In this document: one piece after another, positions 19,803 to 51,343 of the stretch | How the letters are laid out: every line of letters begins with the position of its first letter | How positions within the stretch are numbered: the stretch's first letter is position 1 | Assembly: GCA_002811645.1 (NCBI GenBank) | Contig: PDIP01000080.1 | Span: 59,571-112,010 of the forward strand | Direction: 5' to 3' | Source of the DNA: Corallochytrium limacisporum Hawaii | Taxonomy: Eukaryota > Protista > Pluriformea | DNA: 52,440 nucleotides | The notes under the pieces: model-generated | The model's database searches: none | What the model saw: the letters and a program-made list of their open reading frames with translations, nothing else | What the model was told of the DNA's origin: nothing | Made by a program: the position numbers and the translations under genes

Positions 19803-21305
19803 ATGAAGTTCGCATCAACTGTTCTGATCAGTGCCCTGGCTCTCATTGCCAGTACCACTGTTACTGAGGCTGCTGCTGGTTCCGCCATGGGTGCCGTTAA
19901 GGCCCTGAAGATCGCTCAAGGCCAACCCGGTGGCCGCCACTATGAAATGATGGAGAAGCGTAAGCATGCTGGCAAGGGATCTCTGAAGTCCCGTAAGAGC
20001 CACCGCCACAAGCCGTACAAGTGCAAACACGGAGCAGTCAAGATTGACGACATGGAGTACCCCTGCAACAAAATCGATATGTGGTCCTACGTGTCGCGTG
20101 AGGATCTTGGCTGTGTGAACGACTACGCTGGCTTGTACGTCTCCGACATTTGGGGCTGGACTGATCCCGAGCAGGGCAGAGACTATGCCATCATCACCTG
20201 CGTGGATGGTACTAGCTACGTGGACGTTACCGAGCCCTGGGCGCCAGATGTTGTGGCCTTCACGCCCACTACTACTGACCTTCCTGAGTACTCTACTGGT
20301 AAACCGAAGGAGATCTGGCACGACGTGAAGACTTTCGGTAACTACGCCTTCATCGGTTCCGAGGAGGATGACCATGGGATCCAGGTTGTCGACCTGACCA
20401 AGCTGCGTCAGCTGCGCGGTCGGGCCATTCTGAACCCAGAAACCGTCTACACGGGCGTTGGTGCCAGCCACAACGTCGTCATCAACGAGGATAGTGCCCG
20501 TCTCTACCCCGTTGGTGCCCGGCAGGGTGGCACCGAGGACCTCTGCGCAGGTGGGTTGCACGCCGTCGACATCTCCGAACCAACTAACCCGAAATTCCTG
20601 GGCTGTGCCGCGGAAGATGGCTACACCCATGACGCCCAATGTGTCGTTTATGACGGTCCGGATGCCCGTTATCAGGGTGCCGAGATCTGCTTTGCGTTCA
20701 ACGAGGACACGTTTACCATCTGGGACGTAACTGATGCAGCGAATCCGATTGTCTTGTCCCGTGTTCTCGGTGTTCCTGCCCATCGCGTGCCAGCTGAGGA
20801 CCCGCTCGAATTCTACGACCGGAGCACTCCAGCATGGTACACTCACCAGGGTTGGGCTAGTCCAGACCTGACCTTCCTGCTTGCTGATGATGAGCTGGAC
20901 GAGGAGATGCTGGACCCTCGCCTGGAGGAACCAGTTTCTCCGAACGGTGCCACCACATACGCGTGGGACATTACTGACCTCGAGTGCCCAAAGATGATCT
21001 CTACCTTCACTAACGGCATTCCGTCCATTGATCACAACCAGTATATCATGGAAACCCGTTCCGGCCTCAAATCATTCCAGGCCAACTACCTGTCTGGTCT
21101 GCGCGTGCTGGACGCGAAGAAAGTTGGTCGCAAGGACCAGCTCAAACTTAGGGAGGAGGCCTTCTTTGACATTGCCCCGGATGTCAACACTGTAGCCTAC
21201 GGTGGTGCTTGGTCCGTGTACCCGTACTTCACCGATGACAAGCTAGTGGTGAGCTCCATTGAGGACGGTCTGTTTGTCTTGAGTTACAAAAGGAAAAGCC
21301 AGTAA
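19803..21305 (+). CDS. Secreted choice-of-anchor B / LVIVD-repeat beta-propeller protein (500 aa)
   Basis: Signal peptide. Family motifs SDIWGWTDP, WHDVKT, HGIQVVDL, SHNVVINE, GGLHAVDIS, DGYTHDAQCVVYDGPD, YTHQGW, DDELDE, IDHNQYI, GAWSVYPYF and SSIEDGLFVL. Confidence 0.92.
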   Translation: MKFASTVLISALALIASTTVTEAAAGSAMGAVKALKIAQGQPGGRHYEMMEKRKHAGKGSLKSRKSHRHKPYKCKHGAVKIDDMEYPCNKIDMWSYVSREDLGCVNDYAGLYVSDIWGWTDPEQGRDYAIITCVDGTSYVDVTEPWAPDVVAFTPTTTDLPEYSTGKPKEIWHDVKTFGNYAFIGSEEDDHGIQVVDLTKLRQLRGRAILNPETVYTGVGASHNVVINEDSARLYPVGARQGGTEDLCAGGLHAVDISEPTNPKFLGCAAEDGYTHDAQCVVYDGPDARYQGAEICFAFNEDTFTIWDVTDAANPIVLSRVLGVPAHRVPAEDPLEFYDRSTPAWYTHQGWASPDLTFLLADDELDEEMLDPRLEEPVSPNGATTYAWDITDLECPKMISTFTNGIPSIDHNQYIMETRSGLKSFQANYLSGLRVLDAKKVGRKDQLKLREEAFFDIAPDVNTVAYGGAWSVYPYFTDDKLVVSSIEDGLFVLSYKRKSQ

Positions 21306-33768: not shown

Positions 33769-36700
33769 TCACTGTTCCATGTAGAGGTGTAGTCTGCTCT
33801 GTGAACTGTGTCTTACCGCCACAGGTGGTGGCTGCAGGTAGCTCTGTTGCTGGGTGCTCTCTACATCTGTCCCTCGGCGGTGTGGCTCCACGCTCTGCTG
33901 AGTATCCGTAGGCATATCTGTACTGCAGTGGCCACAACGCTGGGGTAGAGGAGCACGGTGCGGGTTCTTATCCAGCCCGGCTCCTTTGACTTCACCTTGC
34001 ACCACACGCGTGGCTCCCCAAGCAAAGTCGTCCATATGCCAGTAAGCGTAGAATGGCAGATAAATGAAGAATACGGGCAGCGTGATCAGATAGTGGGGCA
34101 CATAAGCGATGTTCTTGGGTGCACCTAGCAGCAAGGGCATCAATATTACTGTGGCCACAAAAACTGCGGCCGTGAAGATTGAGGCCAAGGGAATCTGTCC
34201 GTGCACAAACGACATGACAGCGAGGTAAGTCAAATACAAGGATCCGATGGGAACCAAAATCACGCTCAACAGATCCAACACAATTAAGAAGCGGATACCA
34301 AAAATACAGAAGCCGCACAAATTTGGGGTGCTGATGAGGGTGAACAGGTTGTGCATGGTCGAATTGATCCAGCGACGGCGCTGCGAGCGCAGCACTCGAA
34401 ACTTTTCTGGTACTTCGGTGAAGCATTGGGCCCGCTCCGTAAATGTGATCCGCCTGCGGTTGTGGTGCTTAAGCAGGAGTGTGGTCAGGTACCGATCCTC
34501 ACCAAGCATGAGCAGATTCTTCTCGTGCATGGTACGAGCTGCGGCGCGGGCGTAGCGATTAAGGACCGCGTCATTGATGAGGATCAGGTCACTCTCCCGA
34601 GCTATGACCATGGGACGACTAGTCATGGATTGCGGGGTCTGCTGGTTGATGAATGAGGACGGTTGTCGGTGCTGGACCTGGTCGTGCAGGTGGCTGCTAT
34701 AGGTGCTCCCACTGTCCCACGAGTGGAGGCAAGATGTATCACGCTCATCAGGCGTGCGCATAGGCAACGGATCTCGCACTCGGTACATTGTGAAGCAACC
34801 CGGCAGACAGGTAACCGTCCCAAAACGGGATTCAAATGTCTTGTACAGACGGTGGTTGATAAAATACTCATAGGCCTGGGCCCGGGACCACAAATTCACA
34901 CGATTGGTAACAAGACTCTCACCGCAGGTAGCAATAATCTTTGGACTACGGTGTAGCTCACAAACTAGGGCAGACACTGCACTGCGGCTCAGTTTGGTGT
35001 CCGCGTCTACGGACATGAGAAATTCAATGTCGGTGAGGTCCAACCCTTGACCCCAGTTTGATCCTGCTGTCACTTCGCGGAGGTGATAGTTCATTGCACG
35101 ACTCACAGCCCCGTAGCCACTCCGGCCGCGCACTGTGGCTTGGTAGTTGGGCGAGAGAGCTTTGCTGTGCTTGCTGCGCGGTTTCTGCTTCTGATACTTG
35201 TCTTTGGCCCTAAGCATGTCTTGCATGCGCTTTTCGGATACGGATGGCGGCGCCACTCCACTGTAAGCGTCCCGCAAAGCTTGGAACAGAAGTACCTGCG
35301 AATCCCTCTTGCCGCGGTTACCCTCCTTACCCGGGATTTCCATTTCTCCGCCAATTTTGGCCATGATCACAACGGGTAGGGACGGTAGGCTGTCGTACAG
35401 GCGACGGGCCTTCTTGTTGCGATTGAACCCGAAGCGTAGCAAGCGGCGTCGGTTGGTGGGGAACATGTCTTCAAAAGCCGGAGTGAAGCGAGCACTGAAG
35501 ACTACTACATTGTTGTCCTGCTGGCAGCTGTTTCCGCCAAGAGCGGTGTACGGGACCTCAGATCCAAACTCACGCATTGCTGCAATGGTGTCAATCTTAC
35601 CGTGAGTGACAATGGAGGCTGCCAGTTCAGCAGTAGTTTTGGCAGGACCCCCATTACTGTCAGATTCACCGCCAGAGCCTCTCACCAGGCCATCACAGAC
35701 CAGGAAGATAACCACCGGGTCCTCAGCCGGCATGTCCTCTTCCACAGGTGGCTTCGAGGATTCTTCATTGTTGTCATATACATGGGTTCTATTGCCAGCG
35801 TGCGCATATTCGTGTCCCACATTCAGATTCGCGTAGCTGGTGGTACGCATGGGAATGTCCATGATATCATCATAGGTGTCTGCGCTGGAGTGGTTGTAGC
35901 GCAGGTCATCCAGTTTGTCATAATCATCGTCATCGTCGAGGTCCTGATTGTGGTACTGGTCGAGGCCGTCCAGCCCGTGTTGATCGACATCGATCGTAGC
36001 ATGGTGCTGAGAGCACCCATCCATTGATAACATCGAAGGCGTACGTGATGTGGGCACCGTGACAACTAATTGTTGTTGTTTGGGATGAGCCTGTTCATAC
36101 TTGGTCTGTTTCTTGCGGTGCTTCTGTCTCTTTTTCTGTCCATGGTCACATGGTAGTCGGTAATTCTGAAAAAAGACCGAATTCAATGTTGACCGTAAAC
36201 CATCCTCGTCTTCGGTGTAACAAGTCACCAGCACACCCACTGCAGGCTTTCTCGAGCCATTGCTCCCATTGCCATCCACAAAGTTCGTCGTGTTGGTTGA
36301 TAACGGCTGAACCTGCTGTTTGGTGTTCTCTGGAGTAGGAGTCGTCCCCAAGAGTCGAGCATCTTGCTCTGGGATTGACGTGTATATGGAACCTTTCCTG
36401 CGAAATATGTTCCATATCGGTAACGCAACGATCAATTTGAAGACAAATACTGTGATAAAGATGGCAAGCATGCCTAAGAGAAGGATCTCATTACTATCGC
36501 AAATACCTTCATTCACAGTACTAGAAGCGACTTCAGCGTTGACACTGCCCTGTGGAACATCCTGTTCCATCATAGTCTGTCTCCGTCGATTACTATCTTT
36601 GTTCAAAGCTTCATCCGCGAGATCCTGTGTCTTGCCATTTAGAAAATTTTCAATCGACTCTCGCTGCCCGCAAAATAAGATGCTAACGCCAGCCAGAAGG

Positions 36701-36873
36701 AATATGTAGGCTGCATTGGCGCACAGCACCAGAAAGCAGAATAGGACCTTCTCACGCCAGGCCATACGACTGGCACCATCCTTTTTGCCAAAAAGGTAAA
36801 GCACTGGAGAAGGAATCCAGAAGGTCAGGAGCCAAGCCATGCCGGCCCAGAACCGTCGACGGCTTGTCGTCAT
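33769..36873 (-). CDS. chs: Chitin synthase (GT2, division-2 / class IV-V-like)
   Basis: LLTFWIP...AWREK, TCYTED, CDGLVRG, GNRGKRDSQ, VDADT, QAYEYFINH, VTCLPGCFTMYR, LGEDRYLTTLLL, SQRRRWINST and WHMDDFAWGATR. First in-frame ATG at 36873 (ORF open from 36903). Confidence 0.96.
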   Translation of the reverse strand: MTTSRRRFWAGMAWLLTFWIPSPVLYLFGKKDGASRMAWREKVLFCFLVLCANAAYIFLLAGVSILFCGQRESIENFLNGKTQDLADEALNKDSNRRRQTMMEQDVPQGSVNAEVASSTVNEGICDSNEILLLGMLAIFITVFVFKLIVALPIWNIFRRKGSIYTSIPEQDARLLGTTPTPENTKQQVQPLSTNTTNFVDGNGSNGSRKPAVGVLVTCYTEDEDGLRSTLNSVFFQNYRLPCDHGQKKRQKHRKKQTKYEQAHPKQQQLVVTVPTSRTPSMLSMDGCSQHHATIDVDQHGLDGLDQYHNQDLDDDDDYDKLDDLRYNHSSADTYDDIMDIPMRTTSYANLNVGHEYAHAGNRTHVYDNNEESSKPPVEEDMPAEDPVVIFLVCDGLVRGSGGESDSNGGPAKTTAELAASIVTHGKIDTIAAMREFGSEVPYTALGGNSCQQDNNVVVFSARFTPAFEDMFPTNRRRLLRFGFNRNKKARRLYDSLPSLPVVIMAKIGGEMEIPGKEGNRGKRDSQVLLFQALRDAYSGVAPPSVSEKRMQDMLRAKDKYQKQKPRSKHSKALSPNYQATVRGRSGYGAVSRAMNYHLREVTAGSNWGQGLDLTDIEFLMSVDADTKLSRSAVSALVCELHRSPKIIATCGESLVTNRVNLWSRAQAYEYFINHRLYKTFESRFGTVTCLPGCFTMYRVRDPLPMRTPDERDTSCLHSWDSGSTYSSHLHDQVQHRQPSSFINQQTPQSMTSRPMVIARESDLILINDAVLNRYARAAARTMHEKNLLMLGEDRYLTTLLLKHHNRRRITFTERAQCFTEVPEKFRVLRSQRRRWINSTMHNLFTLISTPNLCGFCIFGIRFLIVLDLLSVILVPIGSLYLTYLAVMSFVHGQIPLASIFTAAVFVATVILMPLLLGAPKNIAYVPHYLITLPVFFIYLPFYAYWHMDDFAWGATRVVQGEVKGAGLDKNPHRAPLPQRCGHCSTDMPTDTQQSVEPHRRGTDVESTQQQSYLQPPPVAVRHSSQSRLHLYMEQ

Positions 36874-37920
36874 TTCCTTCTGTTCCACAATGTGTCTAAT
36901 CAAACACTATGTTCCGTTCCGGTTATTACGTTTATCCATCAAAATACTTTTGTTTTCTTCTACTGTAACATGTCGCTTTAGTTTCCAAGATTCTATTGGG
37001 GGTGCATTCTAGGCTCTGACAATCGATGATCTGTCAAGCTCGTGAGGACCAACGCGACCCTTCTTTCTCATATACCCATAGAAGGTAAACAAATGGACCA
37101 TTGATTTATTACATTCTACACTGGTATCAAGACACTGTCATCATGACCCATTGACACGCACAGAACCCGAGCTCAAACGATCATTGCGGCATAGAGTACA
37201 CACAGAAAAGAACAAACGACGTAAGTCTGCATCATCTTCGACCTTTTCACGAGGTTTGGATATTCAGTCTTCACTGTAGAGCTCTTTTTGGGAAACCAAT
37301 GCGCACACCTCAATTGCAACCTCTTTCGGACACGGTACGGCGTTCGACCACCTTCGCCAATGCACAAGTTCATTGCCTTCGGCTGTTCTCGTCTCCCCCT
37401 TCCCCCCCATCGACCCGACCTCCCCGTGGGAGTGGCGGCGTCCCTGTGCACACTGGCCCGCCTCTGTGTCCCCCAAACCGGTGATAAAAGCACCGACTTA
37501 CGTTGGGAGGACCGAGTTCATTAGGTCAAATTGAACCAGAAATAGGATTTGCGGCAGTACTATAGGGGCTGAATCATTTCGTAACGACTGGTACTGGAAT
37601 TCACCGTGCAATTCCTTGTGATTCTCCTCAGCACCACCTACCAACGGTGATGAAAGCAGCATGTGGCTGTGTTTGCGCACACCGGCAACGGAGTTCGTAA
37701 CGGTAACACAAATATTATATCCCATACATTTTCTTAGGGATTGTCCTGGAAATTAGACCGATCGCTCTTGATCGTAACAAACAAACAGAGATAGGGGAGA
37801 AGCTGACCGAACCTGCAGAAATGTCCATGTCATGTCACGCATGCCTGAATGTACGCAATCAACACGTTAAAGGCACAGGCCAGCACACCAACTTGTCTAC
37901 AGGATCCCCCCTCCCCCGTG

Positions 37921-38005
37921 GGGGGGGGGGCTGGAGGAAAAGAGGGGGGGGGAGATTTGGCTGGAAGAAGGTTCTTTAACCCGAACAAATCCCGACTACT
38001 ACCAA
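37921..38005 (+). repeat. Dispersed ~85-bp repeat, copy 1 (copy 2 at 48888-48972); possible MITE-like element end
   Basis: Identical G-run-ctggaggaaaagagggggggggagatttggctggaagaaggttctttaacccgaacaaatcccgactactaccaa, 11 kb apart. Both copies are preceded by a C-run. Confidence 0.85.
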
Positions 38006-38562: not shown

Positions 38563-39870
38563 CTATCTGAAGATCTTGGGCATGCCATTGCCGATGTGGT
38601 GGTCAACAAACTCATCCTCGAGGTTCGGTTCTGTGTCCATTGCCTTGGACCGACGCGCAGTCATGCCCTTTCCGGGAGGAATGATCCTGCTTTCTGAATC
38701 ACCGTCGTCTATACTGCGGCGTTTCTTTTTGAGTTTGCGCAAGTCCACGTCGCCCTCCAACACATTCATGACATCCTCAGCCGAAGTGTTGCGGCGGTTG
38801 AACGTTGTCTTGATCTCCTGGGGCGCATCAGCGTCTTGTTCATGACTTTGGCTGACATCACGACGCTTCTTCCTTCTGATCTTCATGACTTGGTCCACAG
38901 AGTCATTGCCGAAGAGATCACGGCGAATTCGGGCCTCTGCTTCGATCTTGGCCACGTCCTTGGGCGGTAAGGAGTCCACGTCCCGCCTCACGTATTCCTC
39001 GCCGCCCATGACCTCATTGGTACCTCGCTGGCTCCTCCTACGAAAACCAGTCTGAGGCATGACCGCTTCGGGCACCGAAATGTCAATTTCGGACCTTATC
39101 TGCTTTGTACGTTCAAGACCGATAGAAGCACTTTTGTTCGTGTCTTTGATGGAATCTGCAGGGTTGTCTTCACTGAGTGCCACATAACCATAGCCATCTC
39201 GGCGGTACCATACGTGATCTTTCGGATTCCGGACCAAACCTCTACGTTTCTTGTGGGTATAGTTGAAGTCTGGTGCATAGTCACCAACCGCACCGTTGTC
39301 AATGTCTCGACGCTTCTCCAGGTCAGCGACATGTACGGGATACTGCCCGTCAGCGTTTGTTCCGTCGAGATCCCTTCGCTGCACAGCAATACCGAATGCA
39401 CCAGTGGCGCTTTCTGTCTCTTCAAGGTAACACACTGTCGCACCGCTTTTGTTGACGGAAACAACCACCGGGGTCGTCGATACAGTGCCTGTCACAGTAA
39501 ATGCCTGAATGTTGATGCCACAGACTCCATCTGAGTCAAGGTGCAGGGTAAGAGAAGCCACATAGTCACCATCGTTGGCGTCGACAACTGTCAAAGCCAC
39601 CGGAGCATTGCTTAAGTCTGCACATTCCACTGTTGATCCCTCAGGTTCACTACCGAAGATCTTGGTTTCCGATGAAAAATGAGAGATGAACACGGATGAG
39701 CCACTGATGCCGATAACAAATTCCGGACCAAGACTGTCCGATACTGCGACAATCTCCAAGGACGAGCACAGATCCGGAAGGATTCGTGTGTCGTCTCTGT
39801 ATAGGGTGTTGGTCTCCGGGAGAGCCCGGTGGTAGCGGTCATTCCCCTTTGCTGCCATTTGTTCAGCCAT
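38563..39870 (-). CDS. Putative multi-peptide precursor A: conserved N-terminal domain plus 11 RR-delimited peptide cassettes (435 aa)
   Basis: N-terminal domain aligns with 40851-41777 (LEIVAVSDSLGPEFVIGISGSSVFISH versus YEINTVADNLGSEYTVAITGQALSISH). The C-terminal ~270 aa has 11 RR/KRR sites, 9 of them followed by D or S. Confidence 0.8.
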   Translation of the reverse strand: MAEQMAAKGNDRYHRALPETNTLYRDDTRILPDLCSSLEIVAVSDSLGPEFVIGISGSSVFISHFSSETKIFGSEPEGSTVECADLSNAPVALTVVDANDGDYVASLTLHLDSDGVCGINIQAFTVTGTVSTTPVVVSVNKSGATVCYLEETESATGAFGIAVQRRDLDGTNADGQYPVHVADLEKRRDIDNGAVGDYAPDFNYTHKKRRGLVRNPKDHVWYRRDGYGYVALSEDNPADSIKDTNKSASIGLERTKQIRSEIDISVPEAVMPQTGFRRRSQRGTNEVMGGEEYVRRDVDSLPPKDVAKIEAEARIRRDLFGNDSVDQVMKIRRKKRRDVSQSHEQDADAPQEIKTTFNRRNTSAEDVMNVLEGDVDLRKLKKKRRSIDDGDSESRIIPPGKGMTARRSKAMDTEPNLEDEFVDHHIGNGMPKIFR

Positions 39871-40850
39871 GTTGGTTGATTCCTATCCATGTTGGTTCGC
39901 AAGTCTACTCAGGTTGAATTGGTCTCTCAAATAGATGGAAGAATGTAATGATCCTCGTATGATGCGCAAGGGACACTCATTCCTTTCTTTCACTTGTGCT
40001 CCAGTGCAGTAGTCCTTTTGCATAAGAGTGATCGCCAAGACCCTTGGAAATTTCGAAAAAGAAAGATTAGCTGCAGATTGCAATTTCATGAGCAAGTTCG
40101 AACGACATGCCCACTTGCACAGAGTGGAGGCTCTCGGAACACCGTCGTTCCCCTCGACTTGGAGTTCCTTGTGCAAGTCTTAGGGAGAAGACCATCGAAA
40201 GATAAGCCCCAAGACCCTGCAATCTACGGGTACAAAATATATGTAGATCGAGGCCCTACAACATTTGTGCTTGAGACTTACACAAAGACAATATCACGAG
40301 CTGGTAGGTTTTTCAGTGACCGATCGGCAAACACTGCAGGAGTTTGAACAGCCGCCCGCTACATCGAATGTCCGCCGTTTTGAATTTGCTGGGTGATTCG
40401 TGCACCACCTGGAGATTTTTCGCCACCCTAGACCGAGCCGAGCACTTCGACCTCGATCGACTCCCCCAATACCTAAGTGTTTCTCATTCTCAAAGTATGA
40501 CAAGATGGAGAGCGGCCGACCCAAGGGGGGAGGGGAAATAGGGGACAATTGTGTAGATTTTTCTCTGTTCCATACGGAAACCACTCTAAAACCTCGCAGG
40601 GGGGCAGATGAAACCGGGCAGGTGAAATAATGGGACAGGGACGGGAGCATTGCAGAAGATGTAACGGCAGGGGTACCGCAATTGCACTACTGTTGATCAT
40701 GGCCGGTAAGAGCTTTATGATGTTCGTCGGCTGCCTGTGGAGATGCCCTTGATGATGGTTACGCAAACGAGTCCTAAAACTGGACTCCACAGAACCTTAA
40801 AGATGATTGGAAAAGATAACGGATTCGGATTCTAATTGGTTTGAGTCATG

Positions 40851-41777
40851 TTAGTTACATTGGACATTACCCTCCCTGAACTCGTACTCAGCGCCGTCTT
40901 CCGGAGGACAGTTAGAGCGACGTTTGGTAGCCTCGACGCCTATGTCGTTTCCCTCCTCCTTAGCCATAGTTCCGTCTTGGACAGGGAATCGTCGTGGAAC
41001 ATCACTACGGCGCTTCACGCCGCCGTAGCCAGCTTTGACCATGCCGGAGCCGTTGTCTATGACAAGGTCACTGTCGCGACGCTTTGCACCGCTGAAGCCA
41101 GCTTTCATCATGCCAGAGCCGTTGTCTATAACAAGGTCACTGTCGCGACGCTTGATTTGAGCGATGTTCTCTGTCTTTTCACCTTCCTCTGGGACGGCGG
41201 CAAAGTCGATCAATTTGACCATGTCAATCGCCCCACGGGTCTTCTTGCGGCCGCTTCCGGAGAATCTTGGTCCCCAGGCCGACGCGGGTGGCGGGAGGAT
41301 GGCAGCCCTAACGTCAGACGCGGGCAGAACGGAGACAACAGTCGCGAGCGGGTCATCCTCGTGGCCGGTTACTACTACGACGGTTCCGTCTTCGTCGTCA
41401 CCAGTTTCGACATTGTCTTTGGCTACCTGATCAATGTCAGTGAAATCGATGTTTGTGACCGTCACGGAACAGCGCTGCGCGCCGCCGATCCATTCTGCTT
41501 CGAGAGCCAGAGTTACCTCTGCAATATGGTCGCCGTTGGCGGTGTCGGTGAGGGAAAAGTTTACAACCGGTCCATTGGCCACACCGCAAGGGTTTTTGCT
41601 GTCACTATTCGTGTTAGAGTTCCCTTGATGGGAGATGCTAAGAGCCTGTCCAGTTATTGCAACAGTGTACTCCGAGCCGAGATTGTCCGCGACCGTATTT
41701 ATCTCATAAGGCTGGAGCTTAGGCACATCGGCGGATCGAATGTGTTGCTCCGAGTCGTAGTTCAGTTGCAGTGCCAT
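40851..41777 (-). CDS. Putative multi-peptide precursor B carrying two actin-like peptides (308 aa)
   Basis: Paralogous N-terminal domain. KRR-flanked cassettes DSDLVIDNGSGMMKAGFSGA and DSDLVIDNGSGMVKAGYGGV. Confidence 0.82.
   Translation of the reverse strand: MALQLNYDSEQHIRSADVPKLQPYEINTVADNLGSEYTVAITGQALSISHQGNSNTNSDSKNPCGVANGPVVNFSLTDTANGDHIAEVTLALEAEWIGGAQRCSVTVTNIDFTDIDQVAKDNVETGDDEDGTVVVVTGHEDDPLATVVSVLPASDVRAAILPPPASAWGPRFSGSGRKKTRGAIDMVKLIDFAAVPEEGEKTENIAQIKRRDSDLVIDNGSGMMKAGFSGAKRRDSDLVIDNGSGMVKAGYGGVKRRSDVPRRFPVQDGTMAKEEGNDIGVEATKRRSNCPPEDGAEYEFREGNVQCN
41016..41153 (-). repeat. Coding 69-bp tandem repeat x2 (KRR + actin-like 20-mer)
   Basis: Units 41153-41085 and 41084-41016 differ at three synonymous codons and four mostly conservative residues. 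Confidence 0.92.
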
Positions 41778-44700
41778 TTCGACAACGCTCGTCTACACTT
41801 TTTCCTCTATCGTGTTCGTTATCGCTGCTTGCACGCAATATTTGATGGTGACAGCTCGATGGAGGATCAAAGGGACCTGGGCTTAAGTACAGTGGTGCCT
41901 TTTCTACGTACAGTATCCTTTGGCACCACCTCATGCTCTGTGTTAGCTACATTTGGGTGAGGTTGTGAAGAAATGGGCTGGCCTACAGAGGAAGACACGA
42001 CCACTGGCTGATTGATTCACTGTCATAGACACACATTTCCAATGCCTCTAGCAAATGAAAGGGCACCAAAGTGAGGAAATGACTGGTAAGGTAACATTGC
42101 GGGTGGGTTGAGCCAAGGGCGCCCTCTCGGGGACCCAGGAGCGATTCTTTTGCCCTTCCGGTCTCAGTTTTTCAATAGCGAGAGGTCCTAAGAGTGAAAG
42201 ATCGGGCGACGATATCTGCCCCCACCCCTCCCCGGCCGGTTGAGGCACTGGCGTGTGGATCGATCCCTTGTCACCCCCTCCTTTCACTTCTTATACATCC
42301 TAGACTTCAATTTAGTGCCAAAACCCCCCTGAAACCCATACTGATTAGCCGGCCTGCTGTCTCGTGCTTGCATGCGGAACTCTAGGGCAACAGTTAAGTA
42401 CTGCCACCGACTTAGGGTGTCCACTGGAGCCAGGGTATGATAAATAGGCCCCAATACACTCACATCCTGCATTGTACGATAGTATATGAACTGCTTCATC
42501 GAACTGTGGAGCAGTCGGCACTAAATGGACCCCCGATCAGACACTGGCATCGAAGCTGCGGGGTAATTGGCGACAGTTCAGACAAACCAAAGACTTGATC
42601 GTCCGGCCTGATAAGTCTCTTGGGTTTCTTATTCAACCAATTCATATACTGAATGTACGTGTTTTTTTGCGGATCCTACGTTCAATGATTTGCACGGCCC
42701 CGGGAAGGCTGACGTGCGCGACTTATGAAACCCGTTGTCATAATTTTGCGAATGCTTGAGTCCCCCTCCCCCCCCCCTTTCTTCCCTACTGAGAGAGAAC
42801 TGACGGTAGGGCTAGATCCCGAACGGTGCGGAGCTATCTACGCTCATCCTCCGCTGTTTTCTGCAGAAAGAGCTTACCGCTGGGTGGGTCCGTGTACCGA
42901 TGATACGACCGCAGTCCTCGCGGTACTGAACATACTGTGCGGCCCAACGGGAGTCCAAGGTGTTTTGCAACAGCCAAACCGAGGGCATAGCTAATGAAAT
43001 TAGTGAAGGTACAGAGGCTTCCTGATCTCACCCGTCACTGTCCCCCATGGACTTTGGGTATCCCTGTATCGCAGATGTCGTGCACATGAAATCTGCCTGA
43101 CTGTCATAGACATTTCATTGTCCCCAATGACATACAGTGATGAGGGTTCGCAGCTCACAACGGCAATCGGGGTGCGCACCTTCCGTTTCATTTTTGTGGT
43201 TAAGGGTCCAGTTAGTACAATGGTCGGTCACATACAATTGACATCATTTAGGAATTCTTGCATACACAATATACGTCACCGACACAACCGTGAGCACCAT
43301 AGCAGTTGATTTAATGAGCATGGTGGGAGGGAAACAGGAAAAGAGAGAGATAGAGCTTCGCACGGGGAGTTGGCAGAGTCCAGTTTTCTTGGATTCCGTC
43401 CGCTCCTTTGCGCCATATTTCCTGATACTTGGTATAGTTCACTTTGATTGGTCTCACTTCGATTTTACGACAGCTACCGCGAACACTTGGTGGATGTTCT
43501 GCTGTGGTCTGTTCTCCGTCTCGTTCTGGCATGGCTGTCTACAGCAGGGTCCAACTTTTCTCATGGACGGCAAGACTGTTTCAGAAGGAAAAAATCAAAC
43601 AGTCCGATCCCACGTACACACAAGATGATGGCCGTTCGCCAGCTCAAGGGGGCCGCGGGTCCACTTCCATTTCTTGTTCGCCGAAGTCCTCGTACCACGA
43701 CACGTCCGTGAAGGGGGCCTCATTTCGCACGCCTTCAAATTGAACAGAATATATCTATATAGAACACTATATCATATTTCTTTCCATATTTGGGAGAGGC
43801 AAGGCTCGGGAGCGTCAGAGGACCTTTCTGCTTTGTTGCTTGGCCGTTTGGTTCCTGAAAGCATTGAACGTCGACATTGAGAGAATAATCATCTTGATGA
43901 CGTTAAAGCATACTCAAATACTACAAGCTTTCTCTCCTCTTTGTTCTTGACGAGGAGGGATGGTCATCGTACCATCCTATGGTGTGGCGGTGTTGGGTGA
44001 AGCAAGTTATGGAATAGATACCGCTGTGGAATTTGTGGCCTCGAAGTCTGACGGTACCTCGCTTCTTTGGCATAGCTTCCGTACTTGCCATTGAAGAGTT
44101 AAGTCGCCAAAATCCCTCAGACTGTGCTGGCATGTGTTTGCACCTTTCGCATTCTTCTTAGGTGATGATATATATTGTGTTGTCTTTAGGGAATGCAACG
44201 CCACCCACTCAATATAAGTAACTGACCTGGAACTCTCTTAAGACTTCCAGAGCAGCATGCTGATCAGACGCAGTCACAGTTCCACCGGTGGGGCAAGTCT
44301 TCGCATGCTCTCTTCCTTACCCCCTTCCTCCTGGATCGTTTCCGCTACTGTCCTCAGAATGATAAATTTTGGGTCTTCGCTTCTTGGTATTGGTGGAATT
44401 TTGGAGTCTTACTCGTCTTTTGCATCAGTGCAACCTGCCTGCGTTTTGGTCGGAGGGAATCCTCGGGGTCGTTTCCAAAACGTTCCACGACACGCTCCCA
44501 GATCACCGATTCAAAATTCTAACTGCTCTTTTGTGGTTATTGCCGACCGCGGTTGTGGCCTGGCCAACAGCGTCCAAAATGCAGAAGTCAGGAGATAGCT
44601 TAAACAGATTGGCAGGAATCGTATACGTAAGTCCACAGCGAAATAGGATTACAGATAAAGGTAACCGAGATCTATCAACAGCTTAATACATATATTCGAA

Positions 44701-46400: not shown

Positions 46401-48972
46401 GACGGAGAAAAAGATGAAAGAAAGAGGAACGCGATACCAAGTTCTATGTGGACCAAAGGACAGTTAGCAGGTAAAACAGGAATCAGCCACGCCCCCATCA
46501 TCTGCCAGTGTCCACATTTGAGTTTCTTTCTTTGGTATTCGGGTGGTGTTGGAAGGCCTGTTTGTTGATTAAATTTGGTGCAGTGCTATCCCGACGGTCA
46601 TGCTCGATGCGTTTAATACTCGCAGAGTTGGTCGAACGTCAGTCTGAACTCTGCTTTTGGTGCGCATAGCTGTCGCCAGAGTTTCGAGGATACGTGTTGA
46701 TATGCTTTGGGTGTGCGGCAGTGGGGCATGGTCAAGAACGTACGTAACGTCTATTTATATCTCGGGGGGATCGAAGGATGAGTATTCTTGTGCGTGTGTG
46801 CATGGCCTTTTTAAGAGGTTTTAATGGTTGGTTTCACGAGGGCTACCAGCGGACTGTGTTCCAGAGGGGCCTGATACGGGCTGGGTTGCAGAAAGATTGA
46901 CGCTCGTGATACACTCTCCATGTCGCAAAGTTGTTTCTGTATCTCACTTCCCTTTTACTGGAATAGCGACCAGGCCCAAAGGGAATCATGCTTTTCGTGC
47001 GCTCCCGCAGAGAGACTCGATTAACGTCGGTTTCACCAGGGAGTAATCGTTCGGTTGTACTCGCCAACATAGCAATAATCGAGATCGTGAAAAGGCAAAG
47101 AGGTGAACCCCATTGAAATTGGTGCATGCAAGGACTAGGAATCGGACCCGATGGATACACACAAATCTATGACGGGGTCCGCTATTGTTGGCTGTCATTT
47201 ACCTCTGCGCATAGGTTGGTTTTGGCTCCAAAGTAACATTGCAGGACGACACTTGGCTCCTCCGTTAACCAGGCTGATGGGGCAAGTAACATGGTAGGCG
47301 ACAGAGGCAGGTACGATTTGGCAGTGTCTGTCTAAGCATGTGTGTTACATATTTGATGTGTGTCGCCGTCACCAGCGTCGCTCATGCGGCCCTTTCTTAT
47401 GTGTCCTTGACATCATTTGCGCTCAATTATCATCCATCAATGCATTCATTTCTCCACAACAGCAACCCAATCATCATCTTGTTTCAGCGCTTGTCGGGCC
47501 ATCTGATGACCGACACCACAACGCCATCTTGGCTGACTGACGCTTGAACATGGAACTGGAAAACGGACCATGATCGTAGACGGGGATTGCTGAATTTGGC
47601 AGGGGAACGCAGATTGTCTACAGCATAAAAATCTCTCCCAGAATGCACAAGGAAATGCCAATTGGCCACCGTAAGTCTACCGAAAGGACAGCAACGTCGG
47701 AAAAGCTTGGATGGGGAGAGTGTTTCCCTCATACTGTCAATTCTTAAATCTCGCCCACAATCTCTCCGCATTGCATTGGCAAATTCACTCAATCTACAAC
47801 GACAATATCCCGTATCGCCGTTTGAAACGAACAAATCATTATGTTTCTGTTCCCGTTGGATGCTTGCTTGTCCTCCTGGCTACCCCGGCCCATCTCAAAA
47901 TCTCATAGAAAATTTGCACGGAGGAAGGGAGGTGACGGGGTCAAGCACTCACGAGGCATCCATCTTTCCCTGTAGAGTAAGCCGAGGCACGCTAAACGTA
48001 GGGCTATATTCGGTCTCTCCAATCTCCTTATTTTCAATCCCTCCCCTCTATCCCCTTTCCTTTTCCTTTTCCCCTTGCGCGCTGCGGTTTACTTTGAAAG
48101 TTTTTTTTCCCCCTTTGTTTTTTTTCTTCTTCTTCCAAGAGCTGGGGACCGTGCCGGTAACAAAAGGTATTTTTTCCTGCTTCATTTGACGGCGGGCCGA
48201 GAGATGCAAACATTCCATTTTCGGTTCCTCAGCACGCTGGTTAGCGATGTGATAGATCTATACATTGATTATGGAAAGTTGCATCCGAACGGAGTCTCCT
48301 CCGTTTCCAAGTGCGGGGAAACGAATCACTGCTCCGCGGGCGGGCGGGGGAGGCTGGGGGGGACGCATCCCAGGAATTTGTTATTTTTGCTGCTGAGATC
48401 AGTGCTGTTTCAGTTGCAACTGTGGTGGGTTCATGAGCCGATGGTAGTGAAGGACAAGAGGGGCAAAATAAAAGTTTAAAGGCAAATCACAAAAGACAAA
48501 AAGAACTCCAGCAATTTTTTTCAAATTGTAAAAGTTTTAAAGTTAGTTTTCCCTGTGCAAAACTACCCCAGACCCGGGGAGCACCCTGGCCGTCACGATT
48601 ACCCGAGCAGAGAGGATCCTCCTCACTCGATTCTCCGTTTCCATTGGGCTTGCGCCAATAGTTTTTCTACCTGTTTTTATTTTTTCCTTTTTGGAAATCC
48701 GGGGGCATTACCTTTGGTTGTTCGAAGTGTCACGTCGAAGCAAACTTTTAAGGTTTTAACCGAATTTCGCAAAAGGGCAAAAGCCAACTGGCACCGCCGG
48801 ACGAGACAATTTGCTAGGAACACTCCGGGGCCCCAGTGAACCACACCTTCGCTCGATAAACCCCGCCCCCTCCCCCCCCCCCCCGGGGGGGGGGGGGCTG
48901 GAGGAAAAGAGGGGGGGGGAGATTTGGCTGGAAGAAGGTTCTTTAACCCGAACAAATCCCGACTACTACCAA

Positions 48973-50350: not shown

Positions 50351-51343
50351 ATGGCTCCCCTCGCAGCTGCTGCCAATGCCACCGGTCAATTCTATCTGAT
50401 CAACGGCTCTGGCATCCCTGCTGGCACTTTGCACACCACTAGCATCCCTGGTTTCTTCCAACAACAAACATATGTTTACCCAAATGACACTGACAACCCT
50501 GTCGAAGCCATCATTGTCGCAACCGACGAGACACAGACTCCTTGCACGTTCGAAAACAAGGCGCTAATCATCAACCTTGAAGGGGACCAAGGCTCGCTCA
50601 ACTTGTACACCCAGGCCTCCTACCAAAATTGGGACGATACATGCAATCTGAGTATCGTCGACGCGGTTCCGGTGAACGGTTCCGCTACCAACGTATTCGC
50701 AAGCGACGAATATGTCACTGTCTGGGCCTCCGGTCTCACATCCCCAAATGGCGCCTACACTGTCTTGGCCTCTTGCAACAAGACGGACTACTTGAGCAGC
50801 CGAAGCTGTGGCGGAGTGAAAATGCATGAGCAAGAGGGTGGTTTGGGCGTTCCCTACACCGGCCATCTGGTCGCGTTCAATAATTTAGCCACCGCGCCAG
50901 GTTCTTGGTCTGTGAGCCAAAACGTTGCTGATCTTTTTGTGCACTCCGGGAAATCGTGGCCTGATTCCGAGTCTCAGACTTCCGATTTGGGCATCATTGC
51001 ACAGAGTAACAATTGCAATGGCACCGGCGAGGTGCTTATTGACTTCGACATGGGCCAGGGAACCGCCACTATTGAGTTTGAGTACACGTGGACCAAAGGC
51101 AGTGGGGCACATTGGTACTGTTATCCTAAGTTCCAGGGAGCCGGATACCTTGTAGGCGAGGACGAAACAAGCCCCTTCACCCTCAACAACGGCACGACTA
51201 ACGTCCTGGCCGTAACGTGGCCCATCGAGAACGACCAGGGTGTGCCTACCGTGCACATCTCCGCCTGTACCCAGGCAGAATGGGACAAAGACTCATGCCC
51301 GAACGCTCCCAAAGCAAAGGTTCTCGGTGGCATCAACATTTGA
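50351..51343 (+). CDS. Unknown glycoprotein-like protein with two tandem ~150-aa four-Cys domains (330 aa)
   Basis: Clean ORF with acaATGg context, 8 N-x-S/T sequons and 8 Cys. The halves align (TGQFYLIN/TGHLVAFN, NGSATNVFA/NGTTNVLA, NGAYTVLASC/QGVPTVHISAC). Confidence 0.8.
   Translation: MAPLAAAANATGQFYLINGSGIPAGTLHTTSIPGFFQQQTYVYPNDTDNPVEAIIVATDETQTPCTFENKALIINLEGDQGSLNLYTQASYQNWDDTCNLSIVDAVPVNGSATNVFASDEYVTVWASGLTSPNGAYTVLASCNKTDYLSSRSCGGVKMHEQEGGLGVPYTGHLVAFNNLATAPGSWSVSQNVADLFVHSGKSWPDSESQTSDLGIIAQSNNCNGTGEVLIDFDMGQGTATIEFEYTWTKGSGAHWYCYPKFQGAGYLVGEDETSPFTLNNGTTNVLAVTWPIENDQGVPTVHISACTQAEWDKDSCPNAPKAKVLGGINI

Follow-up and report, generated by a model that had tools for sequence, protein, structure and literature searches.

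Two leaderless paralogues of Corallochytrium limacisporum with dibasic-site tails and a duplicated actin-loop fragment

As reported, Candida albicans Ece1, the candidalysin precursor, is a protein of 271 aa in which seven KR sites delimit non-repetitive peptides (PMC12153327). The definition of fungal KEX2-processed repeat proteins (KEPs) requires an ER signal peptide together with core sequences that are highly repeated (PMC7329392), and the premetazoan phoenixin and nesfatin precursors are secreted and homologous across lineages (PMC9004410). At the sites that Kex2 cleaves, acidic and small residues are favoured at P1' and P2' (PMC2515848). In this study, we analysed two neighbouring genes, A and B, in a stretch of 52,440 nucleotides (the window) from an assembly of Corallochytrium limacisporum comprising 24.1 Mb in 286 contigs. 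The initial annotation had proposed that both genes encode convertase-processed precursors, in which a constant N-terminal domain carries variable cassettes separated by dibasic sites. Based on our observations, we prefer the reading that A and B are leaderless pro-proteins that would undergo kexin/furin-type cleavage following non-classical release, with a probability of about 0.4.

Genes A and B are separated by about 1 kb on the same strand, and their limits agree with those first reported (Table 1). Other genes of the window also consist of one long frame each, among them a chitin synthase. Residues 39-127 of A and 25-108 of B align with 30 identities in 91 positions (33%, E 3e-10), while the tails give no alignment; the alignable part is confined to the N-terminal domain, as the earlier description of a shared domain with differing tails had stated. 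In contrast, the two aligned cysteines of that description were not recovered, with an invariant Cys column in none of three alignments (0/3). A gap shift brings Cys A83 and Cys B64 within one position of each other, and Cys A117 and Cys B103 lie five residues apart in the ungapped register. The codon index is 0.79 for both A and B, close to the genome median of 0.80 and above the 0.69-0.70 of the off-frames, and both the domain and the tail show the codon use of other genes of this genome. A reassignment of stop codons was rejected, as TAG serves as stop in 13 of 74 ORFs, and no kinship was found with the ORF at 50351-51343.

Table 1. Coordinates of the features of genes A and B in the window.
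Feature	Position	Strand	Description
Gene A ORF	38563..39870	minus	435 aa, intact, without signal peptide
Gene B ORF	40851..41777	minus	308 aa, intact, without signal peptide
Shared beta-rich acidic domain, gene A (residues 39-127)	39490..39756	minus	A/B alignment; low-confidence all-beta model, pLDDT 56
Shared beta-rich acidic domain, gene B (residues 25-108)	41454..41705	minus	A/B alignment; weak aegerolysin/actinoporin-like fold hint
Gene A tail	38566..39372	minus	11 cassettes with an RR site at the start of each; spacing 22 aa (median)
Gene B tail	40854..41234	minus	RKKTR site, four KRR↓D/S and one PRR↓F
Cassette B2 (residues 212-234)	41076..41144	minus	Contains actin 8-23 (phosphate loop 1); 13/16 residues shared with the genome's own actin
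Cassette B3 (residues 235-257)	41007..41075	minus	Tandem 69-nt copy of B2 with 86% DNA identity; matches actin 8-23 at 12/16 residues
Cassette A1 core (167-182)	39325..39372	minus	Ankyrin-repeat-like, suggestive only
Cassette A7 core (318-331)	38878..38919	minus	Like actin 179-192, 7/14 identical, p 0.001-0.004; directed test only
Cassette A9 part (369-379)	38734..38766	minus	Like actin 281-291; weak, p about 0.01
Cassette A10 core (387-402)	38665..38712	minus	Like actin phosphate loop 2 (153-168); weak, p 0.002-0.02
In-frame TAG, five codons 5' of gene A ATG	39883..39885	minus	
In-frame TAG, six codons 5' of gene B ATG	41793..41795	minus	

The dibasic arrays in the tails of A and B are real and go beyond chance. 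All 11 RR sites previously listed for gene A are present, as are RKKTR↓G and the four KRR↓D/S sites of gene B, but PRR↓F had been missing from the list for B (the arrow separates P1 from P1'). Successive sites of gene A are 22, 22, 14, 55, 17, 21, 20, 23, 25 and 22 aa apart, so that 9 of 10 spacings fall within 14-25 aa (p 3e-5, for a range chosen post hoc). The motif RR↓D/S occurs nine times in tail A and four times in tail B, compared with 0.64 and 0.20 in shuffles (0 of 100,000 shuffles reach 9 and 4, respectively). Its background is 0.05 per 100 aa, with a maximum of 2 per 250 aa, in 97 other ORFs of the same genome, a kinase-rich set rather than the whole proteome. Additionally, the arginines of the tails are concentrated within RR clusters (25/33 in A and 10/14 in B). 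At the gene A sites, P1' is D or S in 9 of 11 cases (p 4e-5) and P2' is L, I or V in 7 of 11 (p 0.003), preferences that agree with those of cleaved Kex2 sites (PMC2515848). The sites of A and B depart from the classical furin pattern, R-X-K/R-R; an arginine occupies P4 at only 1 of the 11 gene A sites, which makes the site grammar kexin-like, and at none of B's KRR sites. No glycine that could serve as a C-terminal amidation donor directly precedes any site of A or B.

These basic clusters might also belong to unprocessed cytosolic or nuclear proteins, in which they would act as import signals or as charge patterning in a disordered tail, while the actin stretches of gene B described below would be in-place decoy or binding motifs for actin-recognising factors. 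RRKKRR, KLKKKRR and RKKTR match the monopartite NLS pattern, both proteins are leaderless, and the partners of actin are cytosolic and nuclear. However, an NLS needs neither 11 regular RR pairs nor a D or S plus an aliphatic residue after them; six gene A sites are bare xRR with no other basic residue close by, and only 3 of the 17 listed basic sites fit an RRxS/T kinase site. We consider this alternative somewhat unlikely.

A single membrane-anchored furin/kexin is encoded in the genome and comprises catalytic, P and transmembrane parts; its ORF contains a P domain (E 4e-22), motifs of subtilases and, at the C-terminus, a hydrophobic segment. With regard to the convertase-like grammar that had been proposed, the RR arrays, the P1'/P2' bias and the presence of a furin/kexin gene bear it out, whereas the ER leader of such precursors is absent. 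Consistent with the initial annotation, N-terminal hydropathy gave no signal peptide in either ORF, and no transmembrane segment was found in A or B (best 19-residue hydropathy 1.25 and 1.39).

To account for the absent leader, a missing 5' exon had been suggested. This rescue is unlikely because in-frame TAGs lie closely upstream of both ATGs, a scripted scan returned nothing credible for A or B as an upstream exon supplying a signal peptide, and the 24.1 Mb genome of C. limacisporum has 0.0 introns per kb of CDS (PMC5560861). If A and B were nonetheless ordinary secretory precursors of the Ece1, KEP or neuropeptide type, with a signal peptide from an unseen upstream exon or spliced leader, the TAG before each ATG could be a 3' splice site, but a pyrimidine tract is absent before both. 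The best candidate exons require introns of 0.8-1.5 kb and have poor donors and weak hydrophobic cores, and single-exon genes of the same window, for example 19803-21305, have normal signal peptides. Gene A does contain 5 N-glycosylation sequons against 2.7 expected, a difference that is not significant. The absent pyrimidine tracts, the poor candidate exons, the single-exon neighbours with signal peptides and the near-zero intron density leave a hidden leader improbable. Without a signal peptide or a credible 5' exon, A and B fail the definition of a KEP or neuropeptide precursor.

Cassettes B2 and B3 are of actin origin. Residues 215-230 and 238-253 of B correspond to actin 8-23, the first phosphate-binding loop, and the D-N-G-S-G, K and G positions of the loop are unchanged in both. 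The duplication spans exactly 23 codons in register with the KRR site; gene B was thus extended by a whole unit of site plus core. The cassettes had been described as mostly non-repetitive, which is true of A, in which 6 of 120 cassette pairs reach p<0.05 (chance level), but not of B with its 69-nt tandem duplication; the same pair counts leave derivation of the cassettes from a decayed repeat unsupported except for B2/B3. Between B2 and B3, pN is 0.08 and pS 0.29 (small numbers, p 0.02-0.1), and between these cassettes and the genome's own actin, pN is 0.15-0.18 and pS 0.59-0.63 (again small numbers). Since pN is below pS both between the copies and against actin, B2 and B3 are apparently under constraint at the protein level. 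Moreover, the actin-like sequence may run on past B3, through the KRR site that follows, into actin 24-32. Membership of B in the actin family was rejected, as PF00022 scores 22.5, below the cut-off of 27, and this score comes from two 20-aa stretches. The loop motif is common to many conventional actins and does not single out a donor of the piece; a viral donor was set aside after an exact degenerate pattern gave no match in viral contigs. In a literature search of incomplete coverage, we found no paper describing actin fragments framed by dibasic sites.

The actin-derived cores, the site grammar and the absent leader would all fit a further alternative, in which a basic-site protease of the cytosol (of the nardilysin-like M16, metacaspase or calpain type) processes the tails intracellularly and frees the peptides near actin and its partners. 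In contrast, the prime-side preferences are kexin-like (PMC2515848), and the protease of this alternative is hypothetical here; we regard it as distinctly unlikely.

To a lesser degree, cassettes of gene A also resemble other proteins. A blind comparison of the A cassettes with five families of this genome yielded the actin matches of A7, A9 and A10, which are not in actin's order. Over 12 A segments, the combined likeness to actin has a p of about 0.02-0.04, with values of 0.016 for the genome's own actin and 0.011 for a profile of actin; of 95 windows from unrelated proteins, 3 equal A's score. These matches did not come up in unbiased searches of PDB and Pfam, and the resemblance of A7, A9 and A10 to actin is probable at best. 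For A1, all 22 PDB matches at E<=10 (22/22) are ankyrin-repeat proteins, with per-repeat scores of about 6 bits. The ankyrin (A1) and RRM (A4) assignments have p 0.008, for families chosen after the peptides were inspected. Kinase snippets (A7, A8-9 and B1) and a peroxiredoxin snippet (A2), all suggested by eye, failed against the genome's own families, Pfam and PDB. Furthermore, a free-order mosaic test placed the A tail, and the B tail minus B2/B3, at background, and we rejected the idea that the whole tails are scrambled actin. That all cassettes were borrowed from other proteins is unproven. In a bolder form of this idea, the tails would be libraries of pieces taken from conserved proteins of eukaryotes (actin certain; ankyrin and RRM possible) and framed by convertase sites, and leaderless carriers binding membranes or glycans would deliver these pieces to another cell, there to be cut loose as mimics or decoys; we give it low odds.

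The N-terminal domain is acidic and predicted to be all-beta, although the models are poor, with pLDDT 51 for B and a similarly low value for A (Table 1). An aegerolysin-like fold had been suspected from a motif before the B domain was modelled. For the B-domain model, Foldseek ranked ostreolysin A first, a non-significant match (E 0.12, TM about 0.3), and actinoporin-like lectins and RahU recurred with Z 3.3-3.9 for this model of pLDDT 51. The A-domain model gave no aegerolysin- or actinoporin-like Foldseek matches. An aegerolysin profile built on sequences from bacterial genomes placed B above all 953 background windows (953/953); with a larger profile, B fell to the level of 4 of 953 windows and about 5% of shuffles (p about 0.05), and gene A never scored with either. 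No Pfam match to PF06355 was found for A or B, and a search of the genome with PF06355 was likewise without match, its control also being silent. The invariant residues of aegerolysins (W..PW, GR and G[TS][EQ]G) are absent from the domain, and with PF06355 unmatched, we rejected its assignment as an aegerolysin. A remote kinship of fold with aegerolysins is possible though doubtful. Because leaderless members that leave the cell by a non-classical route are known among the aegerolysins (PMC7763983), such a fold would fit the absence of a leader from A and B.

No further member of this family was found. Searches of the own genome returned A and B only, and a full HMMER scan, in which the two-domain profile was run against 1.84 billion representatives, gave no relative; its two weak matches (E 3e-4) were an Arg-rich ORF of no convincing family and an Ig-repeat protein. 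Similarly, a 5.8-billion word search with A and the B domain returned only the queries themselves, metagenome and viral contigs held no relatives of A or B, the ESM Atlas gave nothing usable for them, and NCBIfam and Pfam identified no family. The proposed system for building diverse peptide arrays therefore comes down to just two genes, with no third in the genome or among the 1.84 billion representatives. Two RNA-labelled runs contained nothing from the locus, which is not evidence of silence; this comparison skipped 41 letters at a repeat. The lack of homologues and of the locus from these runs would suit non-functional or barely expressed chimeric ORFs of captured fragments. However, the frames are intact and use genome-typical codons in domain and tail, the paralogues are conserved at the protein level only, pN stays lower than pS both within the duplicated cassette and in comparison with actin, and the sites are strongly non-random, which makes a chimeric origin of this kind very improbable.

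Returning to the leaderless pro-proteins that we prefer, we envisage A and B as two old paralogues in which a small acidic beta-sandwich is held constant as a carrier or targeting domain and may bind membranes or glycans, while dibasic sites split a hydrophilic tail into pieces of about 14-28 aa. If expressed, the protein would be synthesised in the cytosol and would bypass the ER on its way out, through non-classical release, lysis or being eaten. A kexin/furin-type protease, of the organism's own or of another organism, might then cut it at a cell surface, in an endosome or in a food vacuole, freeing a set of mostly acidic peptides. The tails would have grown by duplication of whole site-plus-core units, with at least one core captured from actin. 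The site excess, the regular spacing, the P1'/P2' preferences, the RR-clustered arginines, the in-register duplication in B, the furin/kexin gene and the fold rank of ostreolysin A all favour the pro-protein reading. Against it, the route to a convertase is hypothetical, P4 Arg occurs at 1/11 gene A sites, and several sites could equally serve as good nuclear localisation signals; the cores, for the most part hydrophilic, resemble no known bioactive peptide, no RNA contig of the two runs covers the locus, and the fold hint is non-significant and absent in A. As Corallochytrium grows in axenic culture (PMC5560861), peptidomics is feasible.

If the tails are cut, multi-peptide precursor logic would extend beyond fungi and metazoans to an early-branching relative of animals, and would there dispense with the ER route by which the known cases are defined. 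This would bear on the origin of prohormone-style signalling. Cutting aside, a 16-residue piece of the nucleotide-binding loop of actin has been captured in an orphan protein, duplicated as a site-plus-core unit and apparently constrained, and B2/B3 provide a concrete, testable case of new peptides arising from fragments of a housekeeping gene.

The pair shares with Ece1 non-repetitive peptides between dibasic sites and a similar total size, and Ece1 is a precedent for non-repetitive arrays delimited by KR (PMC12153327). In contrast, Ece1 bears a signal peptide and KR sites but lacks a folded carrier domain, whereas the leaderless A and B combine RR/KRR sites with a shared beta domain and with cores that are hydrophilic and acidic. 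Similar to KEPs, the pair shows multiple dibasic sites, an acidic P1' and whole-unit duplication (B2/B3); however, A has neither signal peptide nor repeats, and B has a single duplicated pair and is leaderless, so that both parts of the KEP definition fail and A and B fall outside this class. As in animal neuropeptide precursors, phoenixin and nesfatin, short peptides are delimited by dibasic sites in a holozoan, but A and B have no leader, no homology in any search and no Gly amidation donor at their sites. The aegerolysins and actinoporin-like fungal lectins (ostreolysin A, RahU, XCL and SRL), which are also the top, non-significant fold matches of the B-domain model, are likewise small, acidic, beta-rich and often leaderless (PMC7763983). 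In contrast, A and B lack the invariant residues of aegerolysins and a match to PF06355. Conventional actin loop 1 is retained in B2 and B3 at 13/16 and 12/16 identity with its key positions kept, whereas B contains only this stretch of 16 residues, as a tandem pair set between KRR sites, and no actin fold. To our knowledge, no aegerolysin or actinoporin-like lectin carries a tail of dibasic cassettes. Collectively, A and B are, if cut, a variation on the dibasic polyprotein theme, and the captured actin loop is unusual regardless.

The first 18 nt of cassette A2, in the tail of gene A (39298-39315), are identical at 16 of 18 positions to the starts of the tandem actin cassettes B2 and B3 of gene B (41067-41084 and 41136-41153), and the word IDNG also opens A2. 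A2 may thus be related to the actin cassette and have suffered a deletion; tested at the protein level, this kinship had no significance. In the genome assembly of the same organism, about 5 kb separate the complete actin gene from a second actin C-terminal piece, which borders an assembly gap on contig C239; this gap possibly hides a second actin copy.

The frame antisense to gene B has a lower codon index than gene B itself, and a similar frame is antisense to the actin gene; it is therefore probably a by-product of codon bias.

Features in the window and, where stated, on contig G000:C239 of the genome assembly (sequence piece L017) or on the upstream piece L020
Feature	Position	Strand	Details
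Antisense frame over gene B	40848-41960	+	370 codons
G-rich element, two copies	37906-38005; 48873-48972		100 nt; 98% identity between copies
Beta-rich ORF	50351-51343	+	330 aa, leaderless, 8 N-glycosylation sequons
Second actin C-terminal piece	G000:C239:213459-213542 (L017)	opposite to complete actin gene	adjoins assembly gap
Secreted LVIVD-repeat protein	19803-21305	+	
Chitin synthase	33769-36903	-	Chitin_synth_2, E 6e-107
Putative serine beta-lactamase-like hydrolases, tandem pair	L020 1674-3056; 5327-6709		upstream of window

The second copy of the G-rich element extends into an assembly gap. For the beta-rich ORF, a Pfam search returned no match, and profile comparison showed no kinship with the beta-rich N-terminal domain common to genes A and B. 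The first half of the ORF scored weakly against an aegerolysin profile, within the top 1-2% of background.

Among the other protein-coding genes, the chitin synthase carries long low-complexity inserts. The two hydrolases on L020 are near-identical proteins of 460 aa, putatively assigned by eye on an SxxK-type motif. Finally, the LVIVD-repeat protein shares 33-43% identity with proteins from many marine bacteria, and its gene looks like a horizontal acquisition.
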